This document shows positions 18,001 to 50,800 of a stretch of 64,000 nucleotides of DNA, piece after piece. The notes under the pieces are model-generated. The model worked only from the letters and a program-made list of their open reading frames with translations. It was not told the origin of the DNA and did no database searches. The position numbers and the translations under genes are program-made. The stretch comes from Leidyana gryllorum EB-2025a (Eukaryota > Protista > Apicomplexa), in assembly GCA_048772705.1 (NCBI GenBank), contig JBLWGC010000104.1, forward strand, positions 868,001 through 932,000. Direction: 5' to 3'. Numbering within the stretch: position 1 is the stretch's first letter; every line of letters begins with the position of its first letter.

Positions 18001-19281
18001 ATCCTGGGTGTACAAGAGGCTCCATGCTACATTGATTATGCCCATGGATGCGTCTACACTGACTGGAGTCTTGCCATCATAGACCCGACAGTCACCAATT
18101 GGCAGCCATTGCAGATCAGCGAAGAACTGGAAGAGTATCTCGGCGCAATCGGTCTTCTCGGCACTCTTCCGGGCACTCTTCTGGATGTCTTCGACTCCAT
18201 AGCCAATTGGTCGCTGAAAGACGAAGTTAAATCTGCACTGATGATGCTGGCCTCGAGTTGCCTCCTGTCAGACACAGAAAGCTCCACTGCCAACACCGAG
18301 AACACCAAAGTCTTACACGCCATCTCTGCTGAGACAATGTGGAGAAGAGCTGTGCGATACAGCTCGTACCCGTTCCGGGTAAAAGACGAACACGCCATGC
18401 GACGATATGATAGCTGCGACAATCGCACGGATCGGCTGGTGGCTGCCACCCGCGCCACAACAGACCTCCCGCCACATGCGTATGTGATGGGGCTCATCGA
18501 TCGTTGCAGAAAGTCCCAACGAATGCACTGGAAGTCCAGAGGAGGCCCCCTTTCTGCTGTTACCGATCCCACAGACCATTCCGCCTGCGCTAATCCGGAT
18601 ATCGCATCGGTAGACCTGCCTCTAAGAGTTCGTGACCCAAAATCTCGCAATTGGGTGCCAGATCCAAGACGCGGATTACGACGCTATAAGGTCCCGTTCC
18701 ATCCCGATCCCTCGGCTCGGCCGCCGCCAGTGCTGGACTACCCTTTCCATCACGATCACGATAATCTTTACCAAACCTTCTTTATCGCCCTCCGAGATCT
18801 CGCAAACACACATATAGATGTGACAGCCCATGTTCAGAGCAGCCGATTCTCCAACCTTTACTGGATGAGAGAAGGGCTACGTGTCTGGCCACTCATTCTC
18901 AACAACACCATTCTACGGGCAGTATCGGTAGCCACCTATGCTTTGCGATGTGACCCCAACTTCCGAGGAGCAAGCGACCAGCTGCTCGCCCGTCCGCAGG
19001 AGACCGTATCCGACCCTTTGTGGATGCTCCCATCAATTTCCAGTACACTTGACGAGTTCGACTATCTCCATGCCAGCTCTGTCTCAGCCTCAGAAGGGGA
19101 AGCTGCGCGACAAGTCGAAATGCAAGATGTTCCCCCGCCTTCTACACAGCCCGAAACATCCAGAGCTGAGAGCAGACGACGACAAAGAAACGTTGAAGAA
19201 GCTGCCCAAGGACCAAGCACATCCGCGCCCAAGTTACGTAGTCGAGCTAAGGCCAAAGCCAAAGTTCAGACACGCGTCTGA
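1..19281 (+). CDS. TRRAP: TRRAP/Tra1-like PIKK-family pseudokinase, multi-exon, 5' end outside window (>=6,258 aa in window)
   Basis: Ten GT-AG introns join the consecutive ORFs in frame: 271-316, 749-803, 986-1049, 1797-1844, 2585-2628, 3737-3785, 5899-5951, 6165-6214, 8336-8380, 8771-8820. The last exon (8821-19281) has Tra1 FAT-like motifs (WRIRSPPIWVGLDMLSDLFVRRNFLF; FVHSARKVYGLADVAGTLLTRMRQLP; ALQSEPRYIKAW). It also has PIKK-region motifs (LQSLHVVMKRNPFVRDRHL; PLQISEELEEYLGAIGLLG) but no DRH/DFG catalytic motifs. Motifs were recognised from memory, not by search. Confidence 0.75.
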
Positions 19282-26991: not shown

Positions 26992-29900
26992 TCACCTCCT
27001 GGGAATTGACTTACAAGGCAGCACCGTGTCAAAAAGCACTTTGACAACTTGCTTAAACGCGTCCGTATATATGGCGCATCCATTGTCACGTAGCATTGAG
27101 GGGGGGACATTATCAGCAATCAGCTCGTCAATGACATCTCTGTTAGAGGAGGTTTGAGCGCCCACGACAATGTTGGGAAACGTACTCTTTGAGGAACTCG
27201 TGAATGAATCGGGGTCGGGGCATTCGGTGCGAAAATATTTCGCCGCACCCTCTTCACTTGGGTTGAGTGGCCGCAGCCGTCGATGAGAAAGTCTGCTGAC
27301 ACTCTCCAATTCAACCGAATCAACTGGCTTTCCCAGCAGATGTGCGAATCGGGGCACCCATTCTTCCATAAACATCGATACGCGATGAGCCATATCAGCC
27401 AACGAAGGGTCAACTTCGGAACACTGAGGGTGTTGGGGGAATTGACTATACGATGCCATCATTTGACCCAATGGGGCTGCAACACGCAGCAAGTCCTCAA
27501 GACTTCTTGTAAGATTCGAAGCCGTCTGACCAGCGCTTGTATCCTCTACTTTCAAAGATGGGAAATGCCGACTCAGTTTCTCTGAAAAATCACCGCTCGT
27601 CGCGCCCAGAGACGCACCCACAGCCTCCGTGTTTCCAGTCTCCTCAGCAGCTCCGCCATTGGGCGTCGGGAAGACAGCGTTCGGGTCCCGGCCGCCGATG
27701 CTTTGGAAATGCAAACGGACTCGAGCCAAGTTGAGCAACGCTTCGAGTCCGAGTTCCAACAGTTGGAGATTGGCCGCTGCTGCCTCTTGACAAATGCGCA
27801 GCAAAACTTGGCGGAAACGAGCGTACAAACCGCAGCTTCCGTCTCCAAACTGAACCCACACACCTTTTGAATTCCATCCGCGCACAAAGATCTCCATATC
27901 GGCCAACATCGGACATATCTGAACATTGTCTCCCATCAATATAGAGGTCGCCTCTTCGAGTTCCGGCAAGAACATCTTGTCGAACCGATGTATCGCATCC
28001 TTGCGTCTGAAACTTGGATGAAGTCCCGATTCTGACTCTTGTAGAGCCATTCCTGCCACCTGACTGCTGACCAACGCTTCGATCAGTGCCAAGAAGTACT
28101 GACTCGAACGACAGAGAGCGTTCAATCTAACCACAAAGGCAGGGAACAACTGAAACGAGTTTGGATACGAAGAAGAATAGGAGACCCTCACCTGGTCGCC
28201 AAAGACGAGTTCAGCGGCTTCACAGCTGAGCAACAGACTATTCGGATCTGCGAGAGCAGAGAAGAACTTTGATCGGTATCTCCCAGTCAAAATGTCAATC
28301 TGCTCCGATGTAAAGTCACACGGACACATTCCCAGGTAGGTTCTTGGATCGACGGTCCAAGTGTAGAGACGCGGGATAAAGTGTTCCGAGGCCAATTGAG
28401 ACATCACCAGCTGCAGACTCGCAACATGTGATTGCGGGAAGATTTTCAGTATAGGAGCCAACACCCAGCCGCCCACTGTGTACGGGACCCGTCGTAGCCG
28501 CTGTAATATGGCGCGAGGGGGTAACGTCCTTATATAATGGGATGTACGATTCTTCAGCACACTGCGGTTGTTCTCGTAAGCGGGAACCCGCAGTGCGGTG
28601 TCGGTGGGTACAAAGTAACAACTTCGGTTCACTCGAGCGATTATCTGCTGCGAGGCTCTGAGGTCGACATCACTCGCCGTGTACTCCACAGTGGTGGCAG
28701 TGGGCAGAAACGGCGGCATCCCCCGTGAGGCACTGAGGACGTGAGCCATCAGCGCAAACTGATCGGGCCAACTCCGTCCGTTGATGATCAACAGGAGGTC
28801 CCGGCGGTTGACTATAGTTTTCTGCACCGCCAACTTAATGATAGCGAGACAGAACTTTGAGTTTGACTGACTCACCGCTGACACTATCTCGTGCATATAC
28901 TCAATACTTTTCATCGTCCACAACGCTCCCCAAAAGGTGATCAGTGCAGTTAGGAAGAGACGTCCCAGACTCCAGGAACTGTGGGCAGAAGAAAACATTG
29001 GAACAGCAGATTCATCAATACTCACGCTGGCGTCGAAGGGGCATAGACCTCCGAGAAGCCGAGGAGGGGAGACGGCGAGAACAAGAATCCGAGAATCAGA
29101 CGGAAAGCGAGAGCGTCAGAGAAGGGGTAATTAGTCGCAACCGCATAGAATAGAGCATTGAAGGCCAGGAAGATAACACCGGCTTTCAGGCAGACCCTCA
29201 ACGTTGTGTTCTCCGAGGACTTGACAGCTGTGACGAGGCGAACCCATTTTATACTGAAGGTTCCCTCCAGATAGCAAAATATCAGTATCGTTGCCCTGCG
29301 ATAGGAGGAGTGGAGTACACCGGGAGTGACGTGACTGCTTATACTCACCCCAGAACCGCACCGCGTGCCGTGTCCCAGATGGTCGTTTTGCACCCCAACA
29401 TTCGTAAGCAAGCGATGGTCAAAGCCGCGTAGAAACGTCCCTGGACCAACAAGGCCAAATATGGTAGAGGACGGCGCATATGCTGCCACAACAGGGCATG
29501 GTAGGGAGCAAACTCGCTATTGTCTGAGATAAGCAGCGGTGTTGGTGGAGGAGGTCCGCGAATTCTTGCCACTTACGAGTGACGAGAGATACTGTACAGC
29601 ATGGAATGAATGCGTAATGCGCAACTGTAGCTACAGCGGCTTGGAAGTAGTCCTGAGCTGTGGGATTGCGGAAAGCGGCAGTCAATTTCAGCTGTATATT
29701 TCGAACGCTTACGGAAGGCACTTCCCCGAACGAGGTATGATAAGAAGGGGAAGAGGAGCAACATGGTCAGAGAGAAGGTGATGAGACCTCGAAGGGAAGA
29801 ACCAATGAGTCTGAAGAGCATATTGGTTTTCATCTTGAAGGAGGCGACGAGCACCCGCTCGCGGAAGTCGTTGACGCTGGTCCCATGGCGCTGTTTCTCT

Positions 29901-30274
29901 TGTTTGAGATTGGCCAATAAAGATATACGCTCGTTCTGGAGGCGTCCTGCGGTTGGTGACGTTAGTCTCGGGAGTGCTGCCGCTCCTGCTGCCGCCGCGG
30001 CCGCGGCGCTACTACTCGGATACAGAGTAGCATTCTGAAGATTCACAGAATGCCGGGTGGGGGTGTAGGGTAGAGGTGGCGGGGAAGATGGACGAGGCGC
30101 GGCCGTCGTAGAGGCATTGGTTTGCACCAGAGCTTGATGACGCTGGGTACTAAGTTTCCGTCGAACGTGAACCAACGGCTGCTCTTTCTGTGATGTTGGT
30201 TGCCCAGGCTGCAGGTGTTGGAGGGGTGGGTGCTTGTTTAGGAAGTCCACGAAGGCATTAGTCGGGGTGGCCAT
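26992..30274 (-). CDS. Multi-pass membrane protein (~6 N-terminal TM segments plus large soluble C-terminal domain), possible divergent NDC1 nucleoporin, ~1,024 aa
   Basis: Introns 29658-29712, 29524-29576, 29296-29348 and 28979-29025 join the ORFs in frame. Hydrophobic segments occupy the first third. The C-terminal segments QYFLALIEAL...PSFRRKDAI and LGLEALLNL...EDTSAGQTASNLTRSLEDLL loosely resemble NDC1 motifs. The gene model is more certain than the identity. Confidence 0.55.
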
Positions 30275-30289
30275 CGTCACAAAAAGGTC

Positions 30290-33200
30290 CTAGGAGTTTT
30301 TCAGGCCCACTCTGGTATGGAAGAGGTGAAGGAAGAGTATGGCTGCCGCTCGGTACGCCAGCCCTTGCACCAGCATTCTAACTAAGCAGCCTTCGAAGGT
30401 GAAAGCATCTTTCTCGCGGACGCCACCGATAAAGTCAGCCACGAACCACTCGGATGCCACTCCAACACCGCCCTCGCCGACTATGAGCATCAGTGCGGCG
30501 TAGGCCTCGCGAACCATTGAGAATTTGCCCAAAAAGTGGAACCAACCTGAGTCCACAGTCGTCCGTAACACAAATCCGGTAGTCAGTAGGCACAGTGTCA
30601 GCATCAATGTAGCTACAGCCGTCGATGCTGCCTTTGACGAGCATAACGAGGATGCGAACAGTGCCATACCCCCTGCACTGAACGTTTCCAGGATAAGGAC
30701 AATCAGCAACTTGACCACTCCATTATCGTACGAACTTATTCCTGTCATGTACGCCACAATTAGACCGAAAGCGACGATAGGCAGCAACTGGATGACAATG
30801 TCGACCGCCATTCGCGCCAATGCAAATGTCAGTCGGAAGTACGAGCCGTTCAGAATGTCCTTGTTGGCAAGCAAACGAGCTTCCGGGAAACTCAGTGCGG
30901 ACTCTATCCCCCAGCAGGCCGAGATCGCCGTCACCACGAACGCGAGCCCGGCAAGGTTCACCACACTCCAAGTGTGGTTCACAACGTCGCTCAGAATGGT
31001 CATGAAGGCTTCTGGAACATACATCAAGAGCTCGCAGATTGGCAGTATGCAATTCTTCGGATGGGCCTTCTCAAAGACAGCTATCATTGAGTCTGCCAAG
31101 CTGCTCATATTCGACTTGATGCTCGGACGGTGAGCCGAGGGCCAAACCATGTACGCAACCAACTCGCTGAAGTCCAGATCAATGGGCAGAATGTCCATCA
31201 GATCTCTCCAGGTACTCTCCAGTATCTTCGCACCGCTCCATTCGCTCGTGGCTGTTAGACGACGCTTCGCCCCTCGGAGATTCAGGCCCCCGAAGAACTC
31301 AACCGCCCGATCCACTATGCGCTGAACCTCTCCTTTCCGCCGAATGGCACGTTGCTTCTCGTCGAGAGTGTCGTCGAACATTGCATTGACCTCACTTGGG
31401 TTCGGTCGGCCATACTCATAGAGTTTCTCGCTGCTCAGCAGCTCCTCAAACCACGGAGCCAAGACTTCCTTGTGCCCCAAAAGATACTCTTCCAACTCTT
31501 CATCGGACATTGCATCGATATCCATCCCAACTCCCGGTAGTGCGCCCATCTCGTCAACGCTAGCAGCTGACTGCATACTTGTCCGTGGCACCGGTGTGGG
31601 GAGTACATTCGGCGGGGAGTAAGAGAAAGGCGTGATGTTCGGTAACCCAGCGCACCTCACCAAAACATCGTACAGGCCGAGTTGCGCAGAGCGAGTCAGC
31701 ACGCATGTCCATCTCAGCAGAACGGTCCATCTATTGAAACATTTCCCCACCTCGTACCAGTCTTGATTATACAAAAAGTCTAGAGCTTGATACGCCATTA
31801 TTGCCTGCTCCAGTGCTTGTTGAGCATAGCTTTCTTCGCCCTCCCATTCCGGGATCTCAAAATGGGTCGGAGGGTATAGATTGGCTAAACCCAACGATCG
31901 ATGGACGCATGGTATGTATGTGGGAATGAGGTTCGCCAGTGTATCTTCGGACCCTTCAGGAAGCTGAAACACACTCCCATTTCCATCAATTCCGTCAAAA
32001 ATTGGATCGAAGATCACACGACTGCCTTCTCCATCCAACCCCCAGTAAATTACAGACATAACAGTTCTAATTCCCAGCAACATCTCCTCAGTAAGGTAGA
32101 AATCAGACTTCGACATTTCCTCCTCCGACTCTGTGGTCGTAAAGTAATTTTCATCGCCCTCTTCTTCAAATGGACTCAAACCAACTCTTCCTTCTCCATC
32201 TATCGGAGAATCGGCTTCCTCAGTCGATGTGTCTTCCCCATGGTACCAAGGAGGGTATGGGAAACTTCGATCCAGAGCAGGTAAAGTCGGTTCCAGAGGG
32301 ATTGTCGCGAATTCATCAAGGGCGTGCGCGGCTTGCCAGTACACTGTGCCCACCACCAGCCCCAATACAATGAGGATCAAAATTGTCGAGCGCCAGAAGC
32401 CGGCATTGAGCACTCTATTTCGTGTGTGTCGCTGCGAGACACACGAAGTGATAGGTGTGCGGGACGATCTCTTCGATAGCCTACCATTAGCAAGACGCCG
32501 ACAGAAACAAACCAACCCAGGATTGCAGAGTAGAATCCCCCCGTGGGTGGCTTGTAGTCTGGGCTATAAGTCATTCCGGGCTTCCTGGCAGCAAGCTCGG
32601 TGGGCTTCTGTTGCTCCGTCGTGTCCTCAAACGCGGTGGCTTGGTCAAGAGCGTCCTTGAGGTCCCTTGAGGCACGTGACGGAGCGCTATGTATATGTTG
32701 GGCAATGCAAAAGAGTCTCTCCAACGGAGTGGGGTCTTCCATGGGGAGATTCAGGTCGAGAGCTTGGGCGAGTTCACTCGAGAAGTACTTGATGACGAAG
32801 TTGGGTGAACCGGTGCAAATGATTCGCCCCGCCGCCATGATGTAAACTCGGTCGAACATATCGAAAACCTGCGAGGAGCGTGTTAATTGAGTGTGCCAAA
32901 GGAGGGTTTACTCGTTGACTCGGCTGATGAGCGACGCATAACACTGACATTTGGCCATTGGACGACTTGACTCGGTCACGCAGCGATTTGACAATCTTGA
33001 CAGCATTATGTGCGTCGAGACCACTCGTTGGTTCATCGATTAGTAGGACCGATGGGTTGTCTATGGTCTCAAGGGCAAAGGCGAGTCGTCGGCGCTGGCC
33101 TGCGAGATGATGGGTGGGTGGTGTGCAAGATTCCTAGCCATGGGTCGGCGTACCTGTGCTGATGTGGGACTGATAGGTGGATCCAATGCGCTGGTCCTGA

Positions 33201-33601
33201 CAGCTGACGAGGTCGAAGGTGCAGAGGAGATCATCAACAACTGCTCTGAGGTCGACCCCGATTGGCGGGAGCCGTAGTCTCGCTTGCGACATGAGACATC
33301 CTCTGACTGTTTGTTCTGAGACAAGGAAGTCGCCAGTTGGGACGAATTTGATAGCACGTCGTTTCTGGAAGGCCATGAGGCCCATATGAGCGTCATCACG
33401 CCACTCGCAGCGTCCAGCGGCGATCGCGCTTCGGCCGAATACGCCGGCGAAATGTTTCAAGAGAGTTGTTTTACCACAACCACTGGGTCCCATGAGAGCG
33501 ACTAGCTCTCCAGGATTGAGTCGTAATGATACATCTTCGAATATGTCTCTTTGGCGCAAGGAAACACCGCCAGTGAGACCAACAACTCTGAGGTAGACCA
33601 T
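30290..33601 (-). CDS. ABCG-family half transporter (NBD-TMD), ~1,053 aa
   Basis: Walker [10 protein letters not shown], signature-like ISTGQRRR, Walker B/D-loop [12 protein letters not shown] and H-loop HQPS. Introns 33100-33153, 32869-32911 and 32432-32484. A C-terminal ABC2-type TM domain is present. Confidence 0.92.
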
Positions 33602-33631
33602 CAGCGTCCAAAAATATGACACTCTGCAGCA

Positions 33632-33639
33632 TGCATGCA
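33632..33639. promoter_or_regulatory. Palindromic TGCATGCA element in the 40-nt divergent ABCG/secreted-gene spacer
   Basis: The sequence GCATGCATGCA is seen directly. TGCATGCA is a known ApiAP2-binding motif in apicomplexans. Function here is inferred. Confidence 0.3.
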
Positions 33640-33641
33640 CG

Positions 33642-35015
33642 ATGTATTACTGGTTGAGATGGGTGTTCTCAGCATTGGCTGTGCATGGATGGGAGGAGGC
33701 TATCTGCGCGGGATCATATCTACCGCAAACACAACTTGACGTACGGTATTATTTGGTCCCAAAGGTCTCGGCGATTGGATCAAAGGTCAAAGAAAAGTTT
33801 CAAGGCAGGGGTCGGCGGTTCTATGTGGCGAATGAGGGGCAAAAGGCTGTGCTGGGTGCCGAGATAAAGACCTTACGGTCGGACTTTATCAATGCCGTTG
33901 CAGGTCTGGCCAATAATATGCAGACGATGGGTCGCACGTCAAATGTGCAGCCCCTGGTGACACTCCCGCACCTTGTCGGATTAGAGATTCTCGCGTCTAA
34001 TATCGAGATTGCAGCAAAGTATCTGGCTGGTGACGTCTTCGACCCGTCATGGCGGCAAAAGGCGGTCGAACTAGTGGGCATCATCTCCAAGTACCTACAG
34101 CCCGATAGCTCCCAGGCTTCAGGGACTTTTCAGCGTGAGGGGCTGGCCAGCGCGGCAGCTCAGATGTTGATAAAACCGTCCAACACTGGTCGTGAAGACT
34201 TTCGAGCCCAAGCGTCTCAGGTCAACGTGCAAGTTGCTCTGAATCTCACTCACGGTAAGTTCCTGTTTGACTTGGCTGGGAAATCAATCTTTCTCCTCAG
34301 CATGCGGAAAGGACGGATATCCAGTTTACTCGACTTTCCCGTACGGACGTGGTCAGGTTTTGGAGATTGGTGGGGATGGGGAGTGGGATGCTGACATGAT
34401 GGAATCCTTCATCCGTCAATACAACGTTGAGAACTGTGTGGAGTCCTCCCTGGAGCCTATTGTAAAGGAGCAGATTTTCGAAGGTGTCAAGGAGTACCTG
34501 AAGTGGCTGTCGCCTCTCGTCCAATGGGAAGCACACGACGTTGCTCATGAGCTGAAGGGGCAAACTGATTACTTTCTGCTGGCAGCCTGGCTCGTGTATA
34601 CGCCTATGGGGGTCAACTTCAAGAAGAAGCGCTTAGACTTTCTCCGAAGGAAGATCGAGCAACACTTTTGCGACATCCAGCGTTCTTTGCGGTCTAATCA
34701 AGTGGATGACGCCCCGTGTTCTCTTACATACTTCGCAGTCCACGTAAGTCATCTGAGTCTCTCTCCTCGGGCGATATATTCATATCAATTCTTCCACAGG
34801 CTTTACAAAGCAATATATTCAAACATGACGTCGAAGATTGCCCAGCGGATGCGCAAAATCTACCACAACAGGCACGGAGTAATTCTGAATCTTTCACAAT
34901 ATTGGGCAAAGATTACGAAATGGAGGTGCCCATGAGTTTTGTTAATATGAGATCCCCAGCTGACGCCCCCCAACCTTCCGCACCGCCCCCAGTGGGCAAG
35001 GCTGTAACTATGTGA
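33642..35015 (+). CDS. Predicted secreted protein, family A short member, ~423 aa
   Basis: Signal-peptide-like N-terminus [16 protein letters not shown]. Introns 34255-34300 and 34744-34799. Similar to the N-terminal part of 35232..40803. Confidence 0.75.
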
Positions 35016-35231
35016 TGATTTTTGACGATTTTGTTCCAACACACCTTCCCAGTGGCGTGTCATGTCACTTTCTCTTTCTAATCAAAGACTGTTGCAACCA
35101 CTCGTTGGATATATCTTCGAGTGGTTACTGTGATGCTAATCATTGTATCATGCAATGTCAGATGTACTTGATCTCATCGTATCTCGCACATCGGCTTCTG
35201 CGCATGTTGCACGGACTTGCATGCTCACTCG

Positions 35232-38200
35232 ATGAAGCCGATCATCTATCTCCTGATCGCATTCATATGTATACCTGGACAGCCTTCGATAGCTGTTCAC
35301 GCAGCTGACACGGCTCCTAGTCAAGAGGTCGCTGTCGAGGCCGTGAGTGATGGTACAGCGACGGCTGCCACCTCGGCGGATTCGGCCGCTGCTGCGTCAC
35401 CGGCTTCTCCTCCCCTACCTGCCAACGAAGCAAATAGTCCGGCAACTGCGGCTGCGGCGGCAGCACCTGTCGCCGCGACCGCAGCAAAACCACCGACCGC
35501 GGCCAAGTTATTGGAGATGGCCGTCTCCCAGGGTGGCACCACTGGCGTCGACGCAGATATGATCGAAATCTATCAACAAGTCTACGTCAAGAGGCAGCTT
35601 AAGAAGAATCAGGTCGTGGCAGCACTCCGAGATATGGTCAAAGTCGGTGTCTTGACACAGCAGAAAGGGGGCAATCTCAAGTCGTCTCCCAAACTTATCG
35701 GGTTGGCCTACATACCTCCCACCAGCCCGAAACCCATTGTCAAAGAAGCCATGACCAAAATTCCAGCCCTCGGGTCTGCCGTGGAGGCCGAGATGCATGA
35801 TCGAGATCGAGCGGAGATCCACAGCACTCTGTTGGAGCTTCCGTCCAAAGATAGACTGGTTATCCATTTGACCAATATTCATGACGATATGGTCAAAGAG
35901 ATCCAAGCCTCACCTGAATCGAAGATCACTATCAACAATTACATCAAGTTAATGTACATTCTCTACCTCGCCCAGTCGCACAACAATCCGAAAATCAGCC
36001 AAGTCAGTCCTTTCCCCCCCAACGCCCTCGATGGCCTCGACGCCACTGCAGGCGCGGGAGGTGCTGATGCTGGCGGCGGTGACGACGATGATATGGACTT
36101 TGAGTTGGAGTTGGATGAGGATTTGGCTGCAGAACTGGAAGAGCTCGCCGATCAACTCGACGAGTCAGAGCTCATTCCGAATGATCTCACCAGATTCGAC
36201 GCTCCAAACATCACGGAACCCGATGCCAAATCCGCCTATCATTTCAGTACCGCTCTCTTTTACAGTAAGCGTCTCTACGAACTTTTCACTTCTAAAAACG
36301 GTCTCGCCCCTCAGGTTGCAGCAAGCAAAAGACGTATATCCAACCGGTGGACCCCTTCGTGGCTGTCAACGCGCCTGTCCAGTGGAACAGTGTTCTCGTT
36401 CGTACCTATGTATTGAACTACCTGCTTCTGCAGTGTGTCAAGTTTGATAAACAGGAGCTCACTGTCAAATTCTTGGCCGATATGGTGGAGTATCTGCACC
36501 GCAAGTCAAATGAGGTCAAATGGGATATCAGTACGGCATTGACTAACTCCGTTGGACAATTGAGTGATGACACACCGGCATCAAAGGCAATGGTCTTCGC
36601 TCTCTGGGCAGGAATCAGTCCTGATGGGATCAAATGGCGAGCGCAACAAAGTTATGATCTCGATATGCAAAGCTCGGTCCTCGAGTGCCTCATATCGTCA
36701 TACATTCGTATCTCTCAAGATGCCTTGGACCCCACATGGTGCTTCTTTGTCATTCCCTTCGATCTCATACCCGGCTTGGATGTCTCCAAGAATTACGGTG
36801 CATCTCGCTACACCTTCGCCCCCCCTCAAACCAATATGTGCCCTCTCACCTCAAAGTTCGATTGGAGCGACCCGGCTTTCGCTAAATACATCAACTTTGG
36901 ACGTGCTGCTCCTACCGCAGCTCCTGTGGTGGAAGAGACTACAACAAACACCACCCAACCAGCGCAGACCACCGAAGAGAGCACCACCGCTGGTGCTGCC
37001 ACGACCGCCGGTGTCGCCGAAGACCCCTTCATGAGCAGAATAAACCCACTGAACGCAAGGATTGCCACTCTCATCAATGGGTACAAAGACAACATGAACG
37101 CGCAAGATCTGGGTGCCCACGTCATAAACGCCTTGAGTCTACTCCAGAAAGCACGGGAGCTCGCGTCTGAGATTCAGAAAGCTCCCGAGGCGAGTCCCGA
37201 GGCGAAAGAGGCAATTGCAGCCACCCTCAAAACCCTCCAAGATCATCTGAACTCCATCAGTCCTCATGTCGCTGCTTTTGTCACCGACATGAGTCCTGAG
37301 GCATCTGCCATTCTCGGACCCGCTGAGAGTCTTCTTGAATCGAGCGCGCTGGATGCCCCCAGGCGGAAGCTGATCGAAGACGCGCTCAAGGGACGTGCTG
37401 CCGGTGCAGATGTCGTGGACGCGCCAGCAAGTAGATCTGCCGCCGCTGCTGCTGTTCCCGAGCCGCCTGCCAGCACCACAGAGGAAGCCACCACCACCAC
37501 CCCGTCCCCGCTGCTCGCTAAGGCCGACGCGTTGTCGGCAGAAATCCAGTCGTTGATCCAATCGTACGATAAGAAGTGGGAAGCACCAGAGTTGGGTACT
37601 CATATCGGCACTGCATTGCGGTTGAACGGTGAGGCACAAAAGCTCGGACAAGAGATGGATGCGGCCAGTCTGTCCAGTTCTAACCCCAGAATAACACTCA
37701 CTAAACGACAGGAGGCTCTGGCTGACCATTTGAACGGACTTACCAAACCCTTGGTGGATAAGTTGAAGGATAAGACCAACGACGCTAACGACGCTCTCAT
37801 CGAACCCGCTCGACAGCTCCTCGACTCCAAGCTTTTGACTGCGAAGAATGCCGGTGCATTGGAGTTGGCCCTGGCTGAACGCGCTACCGCTAAAGACGTC
37901 AAACGTCACGAACCGGCAGCAGCTCCCCAAGCACCTACCGATGATGCGCTCAAGAAGGCTATCGACGCCTTGAAGAAGACCCCATATAGCAAGCAGTTGT
38001 GGAGAGCGGCTGAGGCTTTCGATAAAGCCGTGGCTGCCGTTCCACCATCACCTGAGGTCGAGAAAGCTCGTGAGGAGGCCAAGACCTTTATCAGTACTGC
38101 GGTATTGGAGGGGGCGCCTAAGGACCGAAAGACGACCAGAGCACTACTCGACCCCTCTGAAGTCCGGCCTCTGGCTCCGGCTGCCAACCCGAAATCGGGA

Positions 38201-40803
38201 AATATGGTGGAAGCCTTGGGAGAGGCCCTGGCGACTTTCGCTCTCGCCCCGACTGATACGTCGTTCCTGGCCACGGGTACCGACCCGGCGAAACTGCTGA
38301 CAAGTTGCGCACAGCAACACCTGCAGCTCAATTCGCCCACCCCGCCAGCCAAAGGATCTCCTAGCGAGCTCAATGAGATTGTGAACTTGATGCCGAATCT
38401 TGTGGCACCTCGCTGGTCTGCTCTGGAGGCTTCCGAGGCCGCGGTGTCAGCGGCCAATGCGCTTCTCAAACCCCTGCAGGGGAAGGAGCCGCGGGTGAAG
38501 CTCTTCGATATGTGCAGTAACATCGTGTTCAAGGTGAACGTGGTGGAAGATCTATTGCGAGAGCTCCGCGAGGTGGATTTGTCCGCACTAAAGTCCAAAA
38601 CGAAGAAGGGAAAGGAGGTGGATTCAGCAGAGCACCTTTTGAGTATTCTGCGGCAGTTGGACACTCAAGTGAAATTGGCGCTCGATGGCACTTCAGACCT
38701 CTCCAATAAAGTGCCGCCAATCCTCAAGAATATCATTACGAAGCAATTAGCCAAGGCGACTGAGGATCATCTGGCCAAGTTGGATCAACAAATACAAAAG
38801 TGGACCAAATCTATGGGAGCCACTGGGGGGAAAGGCACCGGCTTCGTCCAACTTTGGCTCAAGGAATGGGAGGATTTCCGCAAGTCGCAGGGGACCTCGA
38901 ATAGCGCCAAATATCAGCACTACCAACTCTGCTACGACTCGTTGATGCAACTGGTCGAGCCTTTGGGCAATAAGGGCTCCACGGATGCGATTGCAGCTTT
39001 GGCAAAGGGCACTGAGTCTTCTACCCGGAAGAAGTGTACCCACCTGCGACAGGAGGTCACGGAGTCTCTCAAATATCTCCAGACACTTGGTGATGTGGCT
39101 GAACCCAAGAAGGTCAGATCGTATGCCAAGGGACTGGAGGATGGACTCAAGAAGAGTACCTTCGCTGATCCAGAGCTGGTCTCACTCTTCTCTACAGCTG
39201 TCGATCTGCTGGCCCAGCAAGACGGCCAAGTTATCAAGGACCGGATGGCCAAGAAACAAAAGGAGGATATGGACACTCTGGAGAAGGTCAAGACTACAGT
39301 GGGCAAAGTTGCCACCGAGAAGGACCGCCAGTCCGCCACCAAAGAGGTCGACAGGCTCAGAGTTCTATTGGCGGCATGTTCGACCAATGATGAGATCCTC
39401 AGATTATCAGCTCAGTTGTCAGAGTTTGTCGAGAAGACCACTCCCCCTCCAGCAGAGTCGACCACCACCGCCTCCGCTGAGACCGACGGTGCAATGGCAG
39501 CCATCCAAGCCATGTTCAAGAGTCTGAGCGATAAGACCACGACTGTCCAGTTTGCACAACAAGTCACATCGGTCAACCAAGCCGTAGAGAAGACGAAACA
39601 TGTTGCCCTCAAGACGTGGGCACAATCGGCCACACCGTCTGTTACAGAACAAAAGGCCGACAGAGAAGCTGTGCGGATCGCAAGCACTAAACCCAGCAAT
39701 GACGCCACTGTTATAGAAGAACTCAACAAGATCTACCCTCAAGCCACTCTCCGATGCTCTGGAAAACGAACCGTCCCCAAGATTCCTTCGCTGGCAGCCG
39801 ATGCCCCGGCCGATCTCCAAAAGAACGTCAACAGTCTCGTGGATAAGGCGAATAAGGAGTACGATTCTTTGAACAAAGATGCTGATGCCAAGTTCCTCAA
39901 TTGGATTGGAAAGCTCACTGCCGCTAACTACGAAATGATACGCGCCAAATACCCCAAGTACGCCAAGGCCGCAATCGCTGACTGCAGATTCCACACCGGT
40001 CTTGCCGATGGCTTGAATAAGGCGTCAGACAAGACTTCGACCACAACCAAAGCAGCGACCACCACCAAAGTCACCACCACCACCAAAGAAGCCAAGACTA
40101 AACCAACGGTGGCTCCCAAACCCCTGACAGCCTCCGTGCAGGTCAAGGCGACACCCAAGAAGGCCGAGTTGAAACCGTCGACCGCTGGACAAGGCCCACC
40201 TTCTAAGGTGCAAGGGAAAAAGCCTGTTTCACCCAAGATGGCCACTTTCTTAGAGAAGGCCGGTAGCATTTTCTCGGCAATGAAAGCCAATCACGGAGAG
40301 CTGAAGCCGCGCGTCGCATCATCCGTCATAGAGCTCACGCTGAAGGGTGAAGAAGATGATGCCGCCAAGGATATCAAGAAACAGGCCAATGTGGTGATGA
40401 AGAACTTTGCAGATCAGAAAGCTGACGGAAAAGGGGTGAATGACATCGGGCAAACTTGTCTGAGCGTAAGTTGATCAGAATTCCTTACTTCTTATTGTGT
40501 ACTTTCCAGGCCGGCAAAGGACAAACCCGCAAGCTGGGCAATGCCAACGTCGAATACCTACCCAAGCCTGCAGACCTCAGCGATGCATTATTGAAGCTCA
40601 TTCTCGGATATGTCTACTCGGACGAACTGGTTGAGCTTGCCAGTGTGTACTCCGGGCAGGCCCACACCAAGGTCCCGAAGATTGAATGCTTACGAAAATA
40701 TCTCCAGGAGCCAACCACAGAGAAGAAGTTCAAGCTAACTGAGGCCAACATGGCGTATGCTACTCGTGATCAAATCACCAAAGCTTCGGATAAGAAGCCT
40801 TGA
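35232..40803 (+). CDS. Large predicted secreted protein, family A long member, ~1,825 aa; Ala/Thr-rich linkers and helical domains
   Basis: Signal peptide MKPIIYLLIAFICIPGQPSIAVHA. Introns 36265-36314 and 40466-40509 join ORFs 35217, 36347 and 40456 in frame. Confidence 0.8.
37019..37890 (+). repeat. Internal duplication of a ~125-aa helical domain in the large secreted protein
   Basis: Copy 1 reads DPFMSRINPLNARIATLINGY..DLGAHV..LQDHLN..PAESLLES..LIEDALKGRA. Copy 2 reads SPLLAKADALSAEIQSLIQSY..ELGTHI..LADHLN..PARQLLDS..ALELALAERA. Each copy is preceded by a TTEE/Thr-rich linker. Confidence 0.75.
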
Positions 40804-40923
40804 GTTGAGATCGACAACTCATTTTTCGATTGTTCTTATGATACACACTCTATTTGAACAATGCCAGTGGCGTTCGCCACTTGTAGCATGCAATTGGTAA
40901 TCTGGTCATCAAAGCATTCAAGC

Positions 40924-41386
40924 ATGCGATTGACCTTCGTTTGGGCTCTTATTGCCACAGTTGTGGCAATTAAACGGGAAGACTTGAATTCTTGGATTGC
41001 AGCCAATGTCAAGGGCACCGACAACCAGGAGGCTGTCATTGAAGAAGTGCCCGATATTGTCCAGTTCCTGACTTTGCAGCAGGTCGAAGAGTTGACACCT
41101 ATAGCCAAGAATTTGGAGACAGCGTATTCTGAGGCTAAAACTCAGACTTTTGCACAGTTGAATGCAGCTGTAAGTTCTAGGGTGTTGTCAATTACCAGAC
41201 GTTTTCACTGGGCAGGTTGCGAAAATAGATGACGAAATAGCGTCACTCGTCTCGAACACTCAGAATAACTTGCAATCTGATCTGCTTAATACAATTGGCA
41301 AGATTTACGTTAGAGATCTGTGCCAGAAGGCATCCGCCCAGAATGAAGACATTTGCGTCCAGCATGAAATGGATGAACAGCTTTGA
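40924..41386 (+). CDS. Small secreted acidic helical protein, family B member 1, 138 aa
   Basis: Signal peptide MRLTFVWALIATVVA. Phase-0 intron 41170-41215. Exon 2 carries IGKIYVRDLC-X10-C. Confidence 0.8.
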
Positions 41387-41594
41387 TGAGTTGTGATGAA
41401 TATGTTCATATACGTGTGTGTGTTTCTCATAACAAATGGCCACCAGGTGTACCATACTACGAGATTGGTGCTTGCCTAGCGAGTTGCCGAGCTACAATGT
41501 AATTGACTGGAGCGCACGACCACATGCAGTGTTGGTATGCCTGTCTTGCACGTCCAGAGCCAGTGCCACGTGTACGTGCCCCATCTCACACAAC

Positions 41595-42333
41595 ATGAAG
41601 GTCACTTTCTTCCTCCTCAACGCACTCACCACTCTAGGCGTCACCGGTCAAGCAGGTCCTAGGGTGCAGATAGTTCCCCTCAATCAAGCCGTAGACTCTG
41701 AGTCGCCACTCCCAGAGGTTCTCCCTCAGGTCCCCGACTCGGCCGCGGTTGCTGACGAACCGGCCGAGGACATAGATCTGGAAGAGGCTAATGCTCAGCG
41801 GAAATATGCGTTGACAAATAGCGGACAACCTACTCGCTCAGCGATCGAGTATTGGGGAGCTACTGCAGGACCCAGAGACTACAGAATGGCCATTGCTCGA
41901 GCCCTCGGCACAAGAGTCTCATCTCTTCCCGCGCGAGCAACCGACGAAGACCAGGGCTACGTGCCTATGCTCACCCGCCAAGGTCGTGACATTGGTCTCA
42001 CTCGGGAGGAGGTATACAATTCAGTGCCGTACATTCGTGATTTGGATTCGCTGTATATGACCAACATGGGAACTGCGGGTACCATCTTGGAGGAAGACGA
42101 AGGCCAGCGAACTCTCAGCATTAGACTGGTGGTAAGTGGAACAGCGAAGTGCCATATAATATCGCCCGTGTTAGGAACGCGAGATTCAGCGCATATTCGA
42201 GCCATTCCAGGGGGATTACCGTATGCGAAACTTCTTGGCACCATTGGGAAAGCTGATCTACAGTCATATCCAAAGCAAGTTGAATCTGGCCTCCTCACGT
42301 TTCGCCCGACCAATCAGCCTTCACCAAGCATAG
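41595..42333 (+). CDS. Secreted protein, possible divergent family B member with N-terminal extension, ~231 aa
   Basis: Signal peptide MKVTFFLLNALTTLGVTG. Phase-0 intron 42132-42174 (GTAAGT...TTAG) gives exon 2 EREIQRIFEPF...FLAPLGKLIYSHIQSK...TAG. An unspliced reading would end at 42419. Confidence 0.65.
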
Positions 42334-42621
42334 AGAGCACCTTAAGACATGTGAAATCCTCAGATATACTGTACTTTACATTCGTCAGATTTGTGAAACC
42401 CATAGTGTCGAGTTGTTGAAGACGAAACGCCCAAGTCAAGAGTAAAGACAGATCGCAACTTGACCTGAAGATCGGGTGTCAAGTATACACCTCAAGTCGA
42501 GGTCAATCAAACTTTGACCACTCGTCAAATGCGAGCAGCACTACTGAGGGTGCGAACATGCCTCGTCAGAGCACGTAACAGCCACAAGTGCACCTATTGT
42601 TTTCACTCCACTTCATTCACC

Positions 42622-43266
42622 ATGCGTTTCCATACACTTTCCATCGCCTGCCTCGTGGCGTCAGCCGCTTGGGCAGTTCCGAACACCTTCTTGGAGGCGT
42701 GGCTCAAGAAGAACATTGTCGGACTCGAGAACCAAGAAGCTCTCAAAGAGTCCCTCCCCAGCATCACCGAGACCCTGGATGCCCCGGAAATGGCAGCCCT
42801 GACTGATCCCACCGAGATGCTCTCGATGGTGTACGACAATGTATTGGCCATCCCCGAGCAGGCGGATCTCGATGAGGCGGTGAGTTTGAGTTTCCGTGCC
42901 GATCATTGATAAGTCCGATTTCAGCGCACTGTTTACACCGAGTTGTTGGCCAATTACCAGGAAGAGCTGGAAAATCCTCTTCAAATCCAGGCGCTGATGC
43001 AGATTGCCAACGAGTACTGGAGTGACATTTGTGAGAATCTGAAACGCCAGGAGGACGAAGTTTGCGCTCCCCTTCCCACTCCTGAGGCAGCTGTGGAATC
43101 TCCAGAGACTGAGGAAGTTTCTGAGATTGAAGAGACCACGGAAGTGGAGGTTGCCATCGACGAGGAGCCCGGTGCCGCTGCCGCTGGACCCCTGGAAACG
43201 GAGGATCCTGAGGCTTCAGAGGCTTCAGACAGCGCAGAGACGACGGAAGTGGCCGCCGAAGAGTAG
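42622..43266 (+). CDS. Small secreted acidic helical protein, family B member 2, 199 aa, Glu-rich tail
   Basis: Signal peptide MRFHTLSIACLVASAAWA. Phase-0 intron 42880-42924. Motif IANEYWSDIC-X10-C. Confidence 0.85.
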
Positions 43267-43507
43267 ACTTCAGCGATTATGACCAGTTTCGATCTTACTT
43301 TTTCAATTTGACGCTTCAACTTTCGATTGCCTGTTCCTTTGTTTATCATCGAACTTTCAATCAGCAGAGATTTCTCTGCCCCGCATCGACCTCTTCTCTC
43401 TCTCACACCTGTTTGTCCAGCACACTTTCCGTCACAAGACGAGACCGGCTCAAACATGCCTGGCCCCACAGTGATATTTCTGTTGGAGATAATACCAAGT
43501 TATCCAA

Positions 43508-44021
43508 ATGCATCTACATAGACTCGTTGCCATGGGACTGTTGGCCTCCATTGGTGGGGCAGTAGAGGAAGAGCAAATGCGAACATGGGTCCGCAACAAT
43601 GTGGCTGGAGACGCCATTGCGGCTGCTTTGAGCGAAGAGTTAACTTTCTACGGAGACGATCTGTCGCTTCTCGAGCTGGCTGCGGTCACCGGCCGGGCTC
43701 AAAAGCTTGCTGACATCTACAAGGATGTTTTGAGCCAAGGGTCACAAGTCGATCTGGAAGATGCGGTAGGTTCTCACGCTCACTTTATACTCAATTGTTT
43801 CCCATCAGCGCCAACGCTTCGTCACAGAAGTTGACGAAGCTGCCGAGAAGCTCTCTGAACTTTCGCAGACACAAATCTTGGACTCGATTGCCAACGAATA
43901 TTGGGCAGATATATGTGAACGACTTGATAGCAACGACGATCCAGCCTGCCAACCCATAAACCCTGACCAGAGCGACACCACTGAAGACGACGAAGAAGCG
44001 CAGCAGATGGACGAAGAGTAG
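43508..44021 (+). CDS. Small secreted acidic helical protein, family B member 3, 156 aa
   Basis: Signal peptide MHLHRLVAMGLLASIGGA. Phase-0 intron 43766-43808. Motif IANEYWADIC-X10-C. Exon 2 is missing from the ORF track. Confidence 0.85.
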
Positions 44022-44867: not shown

Positions 44868-47800
44868 TTAGGAAAGCGAACTCTTCTTCTGTTTCCTTCC
44901 CCACATACTGAAACTTGACTTTGTCACTGTCGCTACCATTGCCGGGCTGGACTCCATCAGTGCGTCTCGATTAGTTGTTGTGTCGATAGTTGCTGGTGTC
45001 GCTTCGTCGTCAAGAGGGTGCATTCCTTTAGTTGAGCCACCGGCTCGTCGGCTCCCGCCACCAAGCAACCGACCAAACCGAGTAATGAACTTCAATCCTT
45101 GACCCTCAGAGAGCACCGATCCTGAGAGAGACAGCAGAAAGTGCACCAACTTTAATCATTCTCACCTTTGCGCTCGTGTGTTCGAGCCGTATTCATTCCC
45201 CCTGATGGAGAGCTTGAACTGACCACACTCCCCATGTCTTTGGGCGATTCTGGACCTTCTGTGGGTGGTTTTGACGAGGACTCATGACCGCTCATCATCT
45301 CCTCCGGTTTTGCGGTATCAGGAGCCACTGTCGATGTTCGCTCGCTGACCAGCGCAGCAGCAAAGGTCCTCTCGGATGGCTCTCCTCCTTCCAACGGTTC
45401 TTCTCTGCTGCTTGGGGTCCAGGGACTGGAATGACACCGGCTGTGCACCAACTCGGCCGCCGCTGCAAACGGAATGGCTCCACATCCTCAGAAGAGACTT
45501 ACTGTGATGTACAGAATCTGGCACACCGCTCGAAGCAGCGTCTTGATTCGAAGCTGGGGGAGTCAAGGACACTCCACACTCAGCGAGCTCCAACTCCGAC
45601 GCACCACCCTGACTACCAGTGAAACTTGTACTTCGCGGATTCGACTTGTCGCCTGTCGGGGTAATGGTCGCACTCCTCGTCAGCGCCGCAGTTTTGACGG
45701 CCTGCAGTGCTGACATCATACGAGAGGGTTTCTGAACAATGCGTAGCGAGCTCCCATGCTGCAAACGCTTCTGCTGCAAACTGGCCACACTCCCAGTCGG
45801 TGAGCCCATATTAATTCCCTCCTCAACTTTGATCGATGACGTCGATGGAGCCATACTCCCGACAGCCGTGATCAACTCCATTGTGCTTTGACTCGAGTCG
45901 TCCTCTTCACTCTCCCTCCCAAAGTTGAGCAGCTCGGTCCCGCCAATTTCGACGGGTCCATCTCGACTCTCGGAAGGAACCATTTCGCTCTCCGACGTCG
46001 TCTCGCCATCAGCGCGAGCGGCTGGTCGCGGTGATGCCGGCGTGATCGCCACGATGGTTCTCATTGCATCTCGATTCGATTTTGAGCCGTCCGTGGGCGA
46101 AGTTATTGTAGCATCATCAGGCGTGGCTTCACCAGCCGAATTTGCCGCCCAGTTCTCTCCAGAATCCATTGCCCATTTCCGCATTGCCACCGAGTAGTCT
46201 ACTTCAGATGTGGGCTCATCACTTCTCGACTGCAGCTGGGCCCATATCTGTCGATCTCCTCCACCTTCCCCACCCGATTGTGGAGTCTTCGATTTCGGAG
46301 TCACTTCCAACGCCACATCCTCTGGCTCTGACAAATCTGTTTGAGGGTCCCTTCCCGAGCGGAGAGTGTCCGGTTGTCCACTGGACGGACTCAATAAGAG
46401 GTCGTCCGGAGGAGAGCTCAGGGACAAATTGGCCAGGGAAGAGTTGATATCGTCGGATCTTCCAGTCCCCACTTTATCTGGATAGTCTGAAGAATCTTCC
46501 AGCATGACGGAAGAGCCGTCTCTGTATTCGCTTGGTGCGATAGCCTCTCGGGAAGTTTGCAACTCAAAGGTCGTCGTGGTATCCTCTGATTCAGACACCT
46601 CAATACTCTCGTCCTGCTCCCTTCCTTGCTCGAGCTGCGCTCCAAGCTCAGTAAGGGGAGGAACCATCGATCGACCCATTGATTGGCTTCGTGGAGCAAT
46701 ACCCTCCACACGAGATTCCACAGTCTCAGACAAAGGCAGGTCAAGTGACTCAGCGGAACCCTTCTCAGACGAGTCATTCACCGACTCACCTTCGGGCGGC
46801 CCACTGGAATCGTCAGCACCTAACTCTGGTAGTTCCGATTCTGAAGATACAACCTCCGCCTCTCCAATGACACCACTCTCGGCTCCTCGCCGATCGTCGG
46901 TATCAAACACTGCTGTGGCCGGAGTCGTGTCAACTGGAATACTAGACGAAGCTTCGCTGGTCTGCTCCATAGCGGCAGCACTCGAACCGGAAGACTCCTC
47001 CTCCATCTCGTCTCCGAACGCAATAGATCCTCTCAACTCGATATCCGTCCTCTTTCGGGCTACTATCGAAGATTGGTGTGAAGACTGTGATAATTCTGCA
47101 CTACTCGCCTTCGAAGTCTCACTCTCACTCCCTTCGCTCTTCATCATGTCAGACGAAAGCTTCTCGAGTGTTATGCCATTCTCGCCATCCTCAGTTCCGA
47201 CTGGCAAGCCAATCGTCGGCACCTGGGGATCATTGTCCGGAAGTGCAATGGCCATTGGGGTGTTTGGCAACTCGGCGGTCGTCTGTGTGGCCTCAGCCGG
47301 CTCTGTCGAGTGAGGATGTATCTCCTCGTCCCTGACCTCAGCCGACTCTATCGCTTGAGGATCCAACTCCTCTTTCGGGACCTCCACCGACTCTGTCGCT
47401 TGAGGATGCACCTCCTCGTCCCTGACCTCAGCCAACTCCTCCTTCGTGACCTCCATCGACTCTGTCGCGTGAGGAAGTATCTCCTCGTCCCTTACCTCAA
47501 CCGGCTCAATCTCCCCGTCCGTTTGGGGATGTTCTGTTTCCGCAGAGTCACCGATCTGAGGGGCAGAGTGAGTGAGCCTGGGAGAGGCAGCTGTGATCTC
47601 AATCCTGGGCTGCACCAGACTTGCAGTATGATCATCGCAATCCATCTGCCAATCCAGATGAATTTCGGGCTCCGGTTGATCGGCGGGGAAGGCCAGATCT
47701 GAGATGTTCTCCAGAATCATCTCCCCGCTGTCCTCATGAATAGCGAAGCTTTCACGGTCCAGAGTGGTCACGTCATCTTCGCGACTGGTCTCAGTGTCGC

Positions 47801-50800
47801 GCCTCATTGGCGCTTCCTCACTCTCAGCGTCGCCTGTAATCACCCCCGGAGATGCTTCAGACTCATTGCGTCGCGGTCTGAAAGCGATCTCCAGCGGCGC
47901 CTCAGGAGCAGCAACATCCTTCACAGCACGATTTTCGGGTGAATCCTCCTCATGCGTCTTGCTGGCAACGTCAGCAACCACTGTGACCTCGACGACGGGG
48001 GTCGGCACTTCCGGTTGAGGAGAGGCGGGCGGTGTGACCACAGCAGCAATCTCCTGCTCGACTACGGGCGCGGACGCGGCCTCATCTCCAGTAGTTCTTT
48101 CGGGAAAGGCTACAGCTGTTGCCTCGGGGGTGACATCTGCGATGGAGACTCCAGTTTTAGAGGCACTATCTGCTTCAATCAGCGACCCGCCTTCAGTTCC
48201 CTCTGGAATCATTTCTAATTCTTCGGAAAGTGAGTCCTCTTGATCGTCTGCAGCCTGAACGGCTTCAGCGTGGGCGACTGGTTGAGGCAACTCGTTGTCC
48301 TCGGGCGAAGGGAGTGAGTCCGTGACTGACTCGGAACTGTCATCTTGAAGCAGCTGTGAAACTGCCTCGGAACTGGGTGCAGGAGTTTGGCTTCCAGCAT
48401 TCGACACGGAATGGTCCCGATATACATCCAAATGTTGTTCTTCTTTATCAATCTCAGATGGATGAGTTCCAATCACATCGGTAGTTTGGTCAACCGCGCT
48501 GAGTGTGTCGTAAGGAGGCGGCTGTAGCACCGCAAGAGACTCTGCTACAGGGAGCGGCGGATCGACTCCGACAAAAGTCCGTCCGCTGCCCCCATCAGCA
48601 GTGAGGGCAGCTTCGTGGCTCACAGACACATATTGAGTGTGATCACTGGTGGCAGAAGGCGAGAACATCAAGTTCGAGGAAGATCCCCCGGTGCCAGAAC
48701 TTGATCGGCTGCCGATGATGAGTCGTTCACCTGGTCCAACAGACCTCATCTCCGTGGCGTTGCTTGGAGTCGACGTTACTATTTCCATACCACCATTGTC
48801 CTCTCTACCTTCCATTGCCTCCTCGGTCTCGGGCGGCGGTGGTACCAGCGTTGATGATACCTCTCGGTGGGGAGTGCTTTCCAATTGCATATCAGGGTGG
48901 GACGTCTGCATCAGACGCACGTGTATCGGCGGTACCGTAGCACGTGCGGGAGGAGCACTGACTTCGTCCTCCCCTGATGTAGTTTCAGTTAGCACTGACT
49001 GAGTCAGAATCGAATTGGCATATGACAGGGTACTGTCCCCCAAGAGAACTCCGACTCCGACCGCTACCACAGGAGCCGCGTCTCCAATGTGCACCGAGTG
49101 GCTCGACTCGTCCTCCTTCAATTGAACATTCTGATTGTCATTGATAATTAGGTCACCTCCAATGATATCGGATCCGTCAAGATCATCCGGAATCAGTTCG
49201 GATGGGACGTAATTCCGAATGGACCCAATCGTCGACATTCGAGCCCGGTCAGCCACTTCCGCCACTTCAATCTCGGGACCCGAGGACTGTATAGATTGGT
49301 TCCCGAGAGAGTTCACCTTGACATGACGCAGCGATCCTTGTTTGCTTTTCAGCGAAGCAAGATCATTTGGGTTGTTCAGATTCAGGTCCACCACTTGAGG
49401 GTCCGGAGACATCAGTGTCGATGAGCGTCGAGTGTTGGATTTCTGTCGCTGTGCCGTCGAGAAGGTCCTTCGTGGCTGCTCGACGTCGGAGTCGTTGGTT
49501 GATCGAACCTTCATACTCTTCGACTTCATGAAGGCCGATGATCGGGATCCACCAAGATCTCGAGACTGTTTCCTCTTTGACGCTGACACATGTTCCTTTG
49601 GAGAACGTGATCGTTTCGGCGACGGCGATTCATGACTTGAAGCCACCACTTCCATCGGTTTGGTGTTTGACGAGCATCTCCCTGACCGCGACTTCTTGCG
49701 TTGGAACTGATTCTTCTTGGCCTCAGCGTCCTCCAACTCTATCATGGAACTCTTTTTCAAGGAGCTCCGTCTCGAAACAGATTTCGACAGCGATTTCTTT
49801 GATGAGGAAGTGCGATCTCCCGAACTCTTTCCTGATGGTCTCTCACGACCACTCCACTCTTCGCTTCGCGGAGTCTCAAGCTGCTCGTCTCGCGGCGATC
49901 GTGGACTTTCATCGTGAGTGTGATGTCGCCGACGGTGATGGTGATGGCGGTGGTGATGCTCCCGGTCGCGATCCCGGTCTCCAGAATCCCTGCGTACGGG
50001 CTGCGGTCGTTCATCTGCAGAGCTGTCAACGTAGGCCTGATGAAATGAACCGCGACTGTTGGTCATATCGTTTGACGGGCCCCGACTGTCCAGAACTCGA
50101 CCGTACTCAGAGAGCCCATCAGCCTCGTCTTGGCTCAGCTCCAACGCTGGGGCAGGCCGTTCCCTCCCCAGGATGTCGTCAAGATCGGGTGGGACGAGAC
50201 TGACATCAACATCACTCTCGAGGGTTTGGCGGGCGGAGAACGGATGGCCAATACTCTCGGTCTTGGCCATACTGTTCCTTCCCATCGGCTCAAAGTCGGA
50301 GAACGTCGCTGGGGAATTGATTTCTCCGTTCTCAGACTTGTCGTGTGGGGACACGGGACTAGATGGCTTCGACGTTGGGTCGTTAGGCTCGTCCTCCAAC
50401 TCGTCTCGGTCGCTGCTGCTGATACTCACTTGTTCAATGGGATATGAAACGTCGCTTCCAAAGTACATTTGTTCTTCGCTGTTCTTCACGCTGTCCTCAA
50501 CCCAAGTCCGACGTTCCTCTGTATTCGTCGTCTGTTGATCGCCACCAGTTGTCTCTGATACGCTCTCGCGAGGACTATTGTAGGTGGTCGGTGGAGGCTG
50601 CTGACGGTTAGACAAAGGCGCTGGGACATCGATGAGTTCGCGACTGTCGAGATCTTTGCACGGAACTTCAGGAGGTTTACTGTCGTCTTCGGCAGCCGTG
50701 GCTACAGCAATACAATCTATTCCTCCAACGTTGTTCGTCTCATCATCGGAAAAGTCTTCGACTGCGGAAGGAAGCTCAGACTCGTCGGGGCGAAAACGAT

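Follow-up and report, generated by a model that had tools for sequence, protein, structure and literature searches.

A candidate secretory island of six signal-peptide-type genes beside a long-loop ABCG transporter in the gregarine Leidyana gryllorum

Paralogous signal-peptide genes of Cryptosporidium parvum lie in homologous and heterologous clusters, MEDLE being one example (PMC8687662). The AP2_1-like motifs of the same parasite are BGCATGCAH and ACATGY, and the AP2_1 core is bound by cgd2_3490 and by its Plasmodium orthologue (PF14_0633 and the Plasmodium berghei orthologue), which regulates genes of the sporozoite (PMC3734150). Among apicomplexan ABCG transporters, Toxoplasma ABCG107 has been linked to lipid uptake (PMC8707601). 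Here we analyse a stretch of 64,000 nucleotides (nt) from the gregarine Leidyana gryllorum (C104:868001-932000, hereafter the window), in which six consecutive plus-strand genes for secreted-type proteins, g1 to g6, lie head-to-head with an ABCG transporter; the genome comprises 15.5 Mb in 237 contigs, with ~52% GC and short GT-AG introns. The gene models, the family relationships and a shared upstream motif suggest that the six genes form a lineage-specific, stage-regulated gregarine secretory island, probably for surface or extracellular material, a reading to which we give a probability of about 0.6.

The six genes are as follows, with families A and B defined below.

33642-35015, plus strand: g1, family A, 423 amino acids (aa), 3 exons, introns 34255-34300 and 34744-34799
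35232-40803, plus strand: g2, family A, 1,825 aa, 3 exons, introns 36265-36314 and 40466-40509
40924-41386, plus strand: g3, family B, 138 aa, intron 41170-41215, Cys118/Cys129
41595-42333, plus strand: g4 (gene 41595), secreted-type singleton, 231 aa, no Cys, intron 42132-42174
42622-43266, plus strand: g5, family B, 199 aa, intron 42880-42924, Cys122/Cys133, very acidic tail
43508-44021, plus strand: g6, family B, 156 aa, intron 43766-43808, Cys122/Cys133

All six stand where an earlier, sequence-only reading of the window had placed them, and removal of GT-AG introns of 43-56 nt leaves a single open frame with a stop in each, none of them broken. Every N-terminus consists of a short basic stretch followed by a hydrophobic core, with best 9-residue Kyte-Doolittle means of 1.6, 3.2, 2.9, 2.1, 2.4 and 2.3 for g1 to g6; judged by hydrophobicity, the signal-peptide-like N-termini that the same reading had described are present in all six. 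A scan of g1-g5 found no further transmembrane (TM)-like window beyond the N-terminus, and the C-terminus of g6 is acidic.

The six had been sorted into two paralogue families, a division that stands for five of them, three in family B and two in family A, and fails for g4, which is a singleton. Family B (g3, g5 and g6; z 8-26, identity 23-34%) is held together by a phase-0 intron and by two conserved Cys residues in a C-X10-C arrangement, and on this comparison its paralogy appears solid; its members are 36-47% hydrophobic and carry a net charge of -8 to -18. Family A joins g1 to the N-terminal third of g2 at 22% identity over 128 aa, with a local z of 3.9 that becomes 7.5 when the alignment is anchored on the phase-1 intron found at the aligned site in both genes, which points to a relationship that is weak but real. 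We rejected g4 as a fourth member of family B, as it scored no better than its own shuffles against two family B exon profiles (165 of 364 and 300 of 417 scored shuffles reached the real score), the sole hint of kinship being a p of 0.016 against g3 in one of three tests. A genome search by sequence and profile detected no further copies of either family; g1 matched C104:1037565 weakly (E 0.06), but the family A profile did not recover this site, and we treat the match as chance.

The largest product, g2, begins with a signal peptide, an Ala/Pro linker and the family A domain, and continues with Thr/Pro/Ala linkers between further domains that are probably helical. Its N-terminal half is acidic and its C-terminal half basic, and it has no TM segment. 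One region of it is duplicated in tandem:

37025-37882, plus strand: internal tandem duplication of g2, aa 582-705 against aa 743-867

The two copies of this ~125-aa unit, itself probably helical, are 31% identical over 124 aa (z ~18), and each follows a Thr/Pro/Ala linker. The repeats were also considered as family B-like units, a candidate rejected on comparison.

Both families had been called unrecognised, and within the reach of insensitive exon-wise searches they are; database searches and structure predictions took single exons as input, with spliced models used locally for frame checks and neighbour comparison. Pfam and NCBIfam scans of the exons of the secreted-type genes gave nothing close to cut-off and no toxin or enzyme domain, PDB sequence searches with exon profiles returned chance-level matches only, and scans of JGI metagenomes gave no match to family B. 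Word-index searches for protein homologues also gave no match for either family; these blanks carry little weight because the same tool missed the true relatives of the ABCG, at 25-36% identity, which a full HMMER search found. AlphaFold single-exon models reached a predicted local distance difference test score (pLDDT) of 54 for family B, with a low-confidence helical prediction, and of 41 for family A. The fold comparison envisaged in the earlier reading was made in part, with the family B model at pLDDT 54, for which neither Foldseek nor an Atlas search gave a fold match; an ESM Atlas feature search with family B exon 1 gave no usable match.

The regions just upstream of the six genes share one word, which we list together with the spacer between the ABCG and g1.

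33602-33641, no strand: divergent spacer, 40 nt, with the palindrome TGCATGCA, an ApiAP2 AP2_1 site, at 33632-33639
35219-35224, plus strand: GCATGC at -13 of g2, an offset identical to that in g1
40886-40891, plus strand: GCATGC at -38 of g3
41522-41527, plus strand: ACATGC at -73 of g4
42556-42561, plus strand: ACATGC at -66 of g5
43454-43459, plus strand: ACATGC at -54 of g6

RCATGC occurs no more than 75 nt upstream of the ATG in 6/6 genes, against 1/40 rough control starts (40 other putative starts, of which three have CATGC). CATGC is the sole 5-mer common to all six upstream regions, and the probability that any 5-mer is shared by six random windows is 0.003. The sites fit the C. parvum motifs BGCATGCAH and ACATGY, and AP2 domains are encoded in this genome, in which the perfect TGCATGCA has 146 copies, one of them in the ABCG-g1 spacer. 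Since RCATGC stands upstream of all six genes and TGCATGCA in the spacer, their co-regulation is likely on this motif evidence, and the co-regulated secreted module proposed by the sequence-only reading gains partial support from the shared AP2_1-type promoter motif. ACATGC is also found between an actin gene and its divergent neighbour, in a spacer of 94 nt (L007:2647-2740). The top-scoring PDB entries for the actin of this genome are 8trm and then Actin-1 and Actin-2 entries, of apicomplexan type, which we take to be those of Toxoplasma and Plasmodium.

On the other side of the spacer lies the transporter.

30290-33601, minus strand: ABCG half-transporter, 1,053 aa; exons 33601-33154, 33099-32912, 32868-32485 and 32431-30290
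30965-32332, minus strand: first extracellular loop of the ABCG (TM1-TM2), ~456 aa, with a G-x-D-G..D-G-[IV]-D-G motif and a C-x4-C

Two features ascribed to this ABCG were confirmed: it diverges from g1 with an ATG-to-ATG gap of exactly 40 nt (33601/33642), and it has a giant extracellular loop, ~456 aa between TM1 and TM2. Matches to PF00005 (ABC_tran, E 6e-14) and PF01061 (ABC2_membrane, E 2e-14) both pass the cut-off, with the nucleotide-binding domain (NBD) first, and the spliced model is a single open frame. Walker A, Walker B with its catalytic Glu, and the H-loop are intact; the signature ISTGQ deviates, as it does in gregarine relatives (ISKGQ, LSHGQ). The Asp/Gly-rich motif of the loop is reminiscent of a calcium-binding loop, and the C-x4-C lies near TM2.

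Judging from profile and tree comparisons, the long loop is a trait of a gregarine-wide ABCG clade. Some six ABC2-type loci exist in this genome; paralogues on C42 and C208 have long loops homologous to that of the window ABCG, and no similarity to it was detected in the long loop of the C75 ABCG. A profile search found ~30 protein clusters carrying the same long loop, whose named members are gregarine save for two transcriptome entries and one bee-assembly entry, and matches to the loop by itself reach E 6e-10. Its nearest named relatives are proteins of Gregarina niphandrodes, Gregarina sp. Pseudo9 and Blabericola migrator, which together with the actin matches places the genome among gregarines or their close kin. 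In a quick tree a 44-row group (support 94) holds the named gregarine proteins, with the window ABCG and three orthologues (support 100) as a long-branch subclade. The TM1-TM2 segment measures 280-460 aa in the gregarine clade, whereas most other ABCG matches have a short link, as does the Neospora match by a rough TM scan. An ESM Atlas search with the loop returned only weak ABC2 fragments, JGI metagenome scans gave no ABCG orthologues, and a literature search found no description of the clade. Further examples of long-loop ABCG genes are at L017:5410-7461, L020:2933-5296 and L021:6398-8053 (proteins P0001-P0060). One clade member, P0042 (XP_053991091.1), is annotated as from the bee Hylaeus volcanicus, and its position inside the gregarine clade indicates that it is probably a gregarine contaminant in a bee assembly.

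The sequence-only reading had partnered the ABCG with lipid carriers, a proposal not borne out by clade members elsewhere, which lack a secreted 5' neighbour: a rough scan found no signal-peptide gene at the 5' end of the C42, C208 and C75 ABCGs, and the 5' neighbours of six long-loop ABCGs from other gregarine assemblies are not of secreted type either. Linkage in relatives had been set as a test beforehand, and the block of ABCG and secreted genes is not kept at the orthologue loci L030 or L032, on which the upstream comparison rests (a third orthologue locus, L031, is too short). At L030 the upstream gene is co-oriented and encodes 1,652 aa without a signal peptide; compared with g2 and with the 2,865-aa flank described below, it matched neither, and homology to them was rejected. 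At L032 the upstream gene is a co-oriented tandem ABCG. The two long-loop ABCG genes there (L032:680-6850), one of them the orthologue of the window ABCG, stand 60 nt apart in tandem, and their products may be a heterodimer pair. At four further long-loop ABCG loci the neighbours are housekeeping-type or non-secreted.

On the 3' side, the gene that follows the ABCG after 15 nt (window 26992-30274) has weak colinear similarity to L030:13838-16255 (z 3.7 and 2.9), and the ABCG-downstream genes of both the window and L030 have a similar N-terminal DFLxxHP; the comparison hints that the 3' neighbour of the ABCG has been conserved and the secreted block has not. The 40-nt gap between the ABCG and g1 is short but of the same order as other head-to-head gaps in the genome, which measure 80 nt at another ABCG and 94 nt at actin. 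The ABCG is most likely a neighbour of the secreted proteins rather than their dedicated partner.

Similarity and shared introns show that local duplication gave rise to a pair of family A genes and to three of family B, with a singleton among them. We propose that a single ApiAP2 factor of the cgd2_3490 / AP2-SP type, suggested by the motif, binds the RCATGC sites and activates the whole set during one stage of the life cycle. The products, with their predicted signal peptides, would enter the endoplasmic reticulum and, having no TM segment or evident glycosylphosphatidylinositol tail, would be released in soluble form. Most likely they would then build material on the surface or outside the cell, where the parasite meets its host or at the cyst interface; g2 might serve there as a long stalk with linkers that are probably glycosylated, and family B might supply small helical subunits, acidic and closed by a disulfide. 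The ABCG has the spacer in common with g1 and may be activated along with it, but belongs to a clade of gregarine ABCGs that is older.

Several points weigh against this reading. Because paralogues are not independent of one another, the motif count amounts to three units and not six, and the control starts are rough. The signal peptide of g1 is the weakest of the six (Kyte-Doolittle mean 1.6), only two orthologous ABCG loci are informative, both of them distant (25-36% identity), and no observation links the products with a coat in preference to host cells.

The strongest rival, still an unlikely one, is that the same co-regulated genes encode host-directed effectors, which sporozoites or young trophozoites would release from their apical organelles into the host gut cell or onto it, in the manner of Cryptosporidium MEDLE proteins or of dense-granule proteins. 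Such a role would agree with the use of the AP2_1 motif in Plasmodium, where it marks sporozoite-specific genes (PMC3734150), with the fast divergence of the proteins (22-34% between neighbours) and with the clustering of exported families in C. parvum (PMC8687662), but no shared RxL/KxL processing motif follows the signal peptides within the first 130 aa, g5 and g6 having none at all. Moreover, family B looks folded and disulfide-bonded, and folded-domain fusions are reported to hinder the export of MEDLE2 (PMC8687662); the exon scans, in which no toxin or enzyme domain was found, also argue against effectors.

Less probable again is the absence of any module, with three unrelated secreted families adjacent through chance and local duplication, and with RCATGC as a common promoter word. 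Here the small number of independent units, three only, counts in favour, as do the presence of RCATGC in the divergent spacer of actin and the density of CATGC, which is no rarer in non-coding than in coding DNA (1.4 vs 1.1 per kb). Chance does not readily explain why the motif is kept in six promoters despite protein divergence to 22-34%, however, nor its occurrence at 1/40 controls; the motif is also one that was known beforehand.

We consider improbable a lipid export or import module in which family B proteins act as soluble, amphipathic, apolipoprotein-like acceptors that dock on the ABCG loop, all under one bidirectional promoter. The 40-nt spacer with its perfect TGCATGCA, a sequence with 146 genomic copies, the small size, predicted helicity (at low confidence) and 36-47% hydrophobic content of family B, the link of Toxoplasma ABCG107 to lipid uptake (PMC8707601) and the large ectodomain, which suggests some extracellular partner, all fit such a module. 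Yet the gene facing the ABCG belongs to family A, with family B 7-10 kb off; three other long-loop ABCGs here and six in other gregarine assemblies lack a secreted 5' neighbour; the loop is net acidic by inspection and would repel family B proteins of net charge -8 to -18; and exon-wise searches matched no lipid-binding family or fold. Least probable of all is its operon-like extension, in which the gregarine ABCG loop would dock secreted lipid acceptors and family B, with family A as scaffold, would be driven from one bidirectional ApiAP2 promoter for lipid export.

The flanks of the locus had been described as housekeeping or intracellular genes; a housekeeping role finds no support here, as the direct flanks have no Pfam match. 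An open reading frame (ORF) at window 45318-53915 encodes 2,865 aa, acidic and of low complexity, without a Pfam match, and another ORF at window 8821-19281 encodes 3,486 aa, likewise without one.

Gregarine secretomes are almost unstudied, and a motif-marked block of six orphan secreted-type genes offers a usable entry point to them. The AP2_1 site suggests that the same regulatory word is in use in gregarines. The more durable by-product of the analysis may be the gregarine ABCG clade with its 280-460 aa first-loop ectodomain; were its loop to dock a secreted lipid acceptor, it would represent a novel mode of cargo transfer by an ABCG.

Compared with the C. parvum clusters, the secretory island proposed here is alike in placing fast-evolving, secreted-type and putatively lineage-specific paralogues side by side in a compact apicomplexan genome. 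It differs in having no detected sequence relation to them, no shared amino-acid repeat motif and no export motif, and in that its genes carry conserved short introns. The C. parvum clusters are often near telomeres, whereas this locus, at ~0.90-0.91 Mb, is not subtelomeric, since it lies ~900 kb into a 1.27-Mb contig. Unlike MEDLE/PEXEL-type effectors, g1-g6 have no shared basic-x-Leu motif after the signal peptide in their first 130 aa. Nematode FAR and NPA units, saposin-like proteins and apolipophorin-III are, we presume, possible likenesses of family B, and we treat them as a lead only: family B resembles these lipid-binding proteins in being small, secreted-type and predicted all-helical, and differs from them in having no Pfam, PDB or fold match (exon-wise, with a low-confidence model) and, where a saposin-like protein would be expected to have six conserved Cys, two. 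The window ABCG shares its NBD-first half-transporter topology and intact catalytic motifs with Toxoplasma ABCG107, and its long first extracellular loop with EZG43790.1 and EZG55557.1 of G. niphandrodes. As in the AP2_1 regulon, TGCATGCA, GCATGC and ACATGY sites lie just 5' of the start codons; unlike in that regulon, these candidate sites stand only 3-73 nt from the ATG. The proteins themselves are unrecognised; the architecture that holds them is a fairly ordinary one for apicomplexans.

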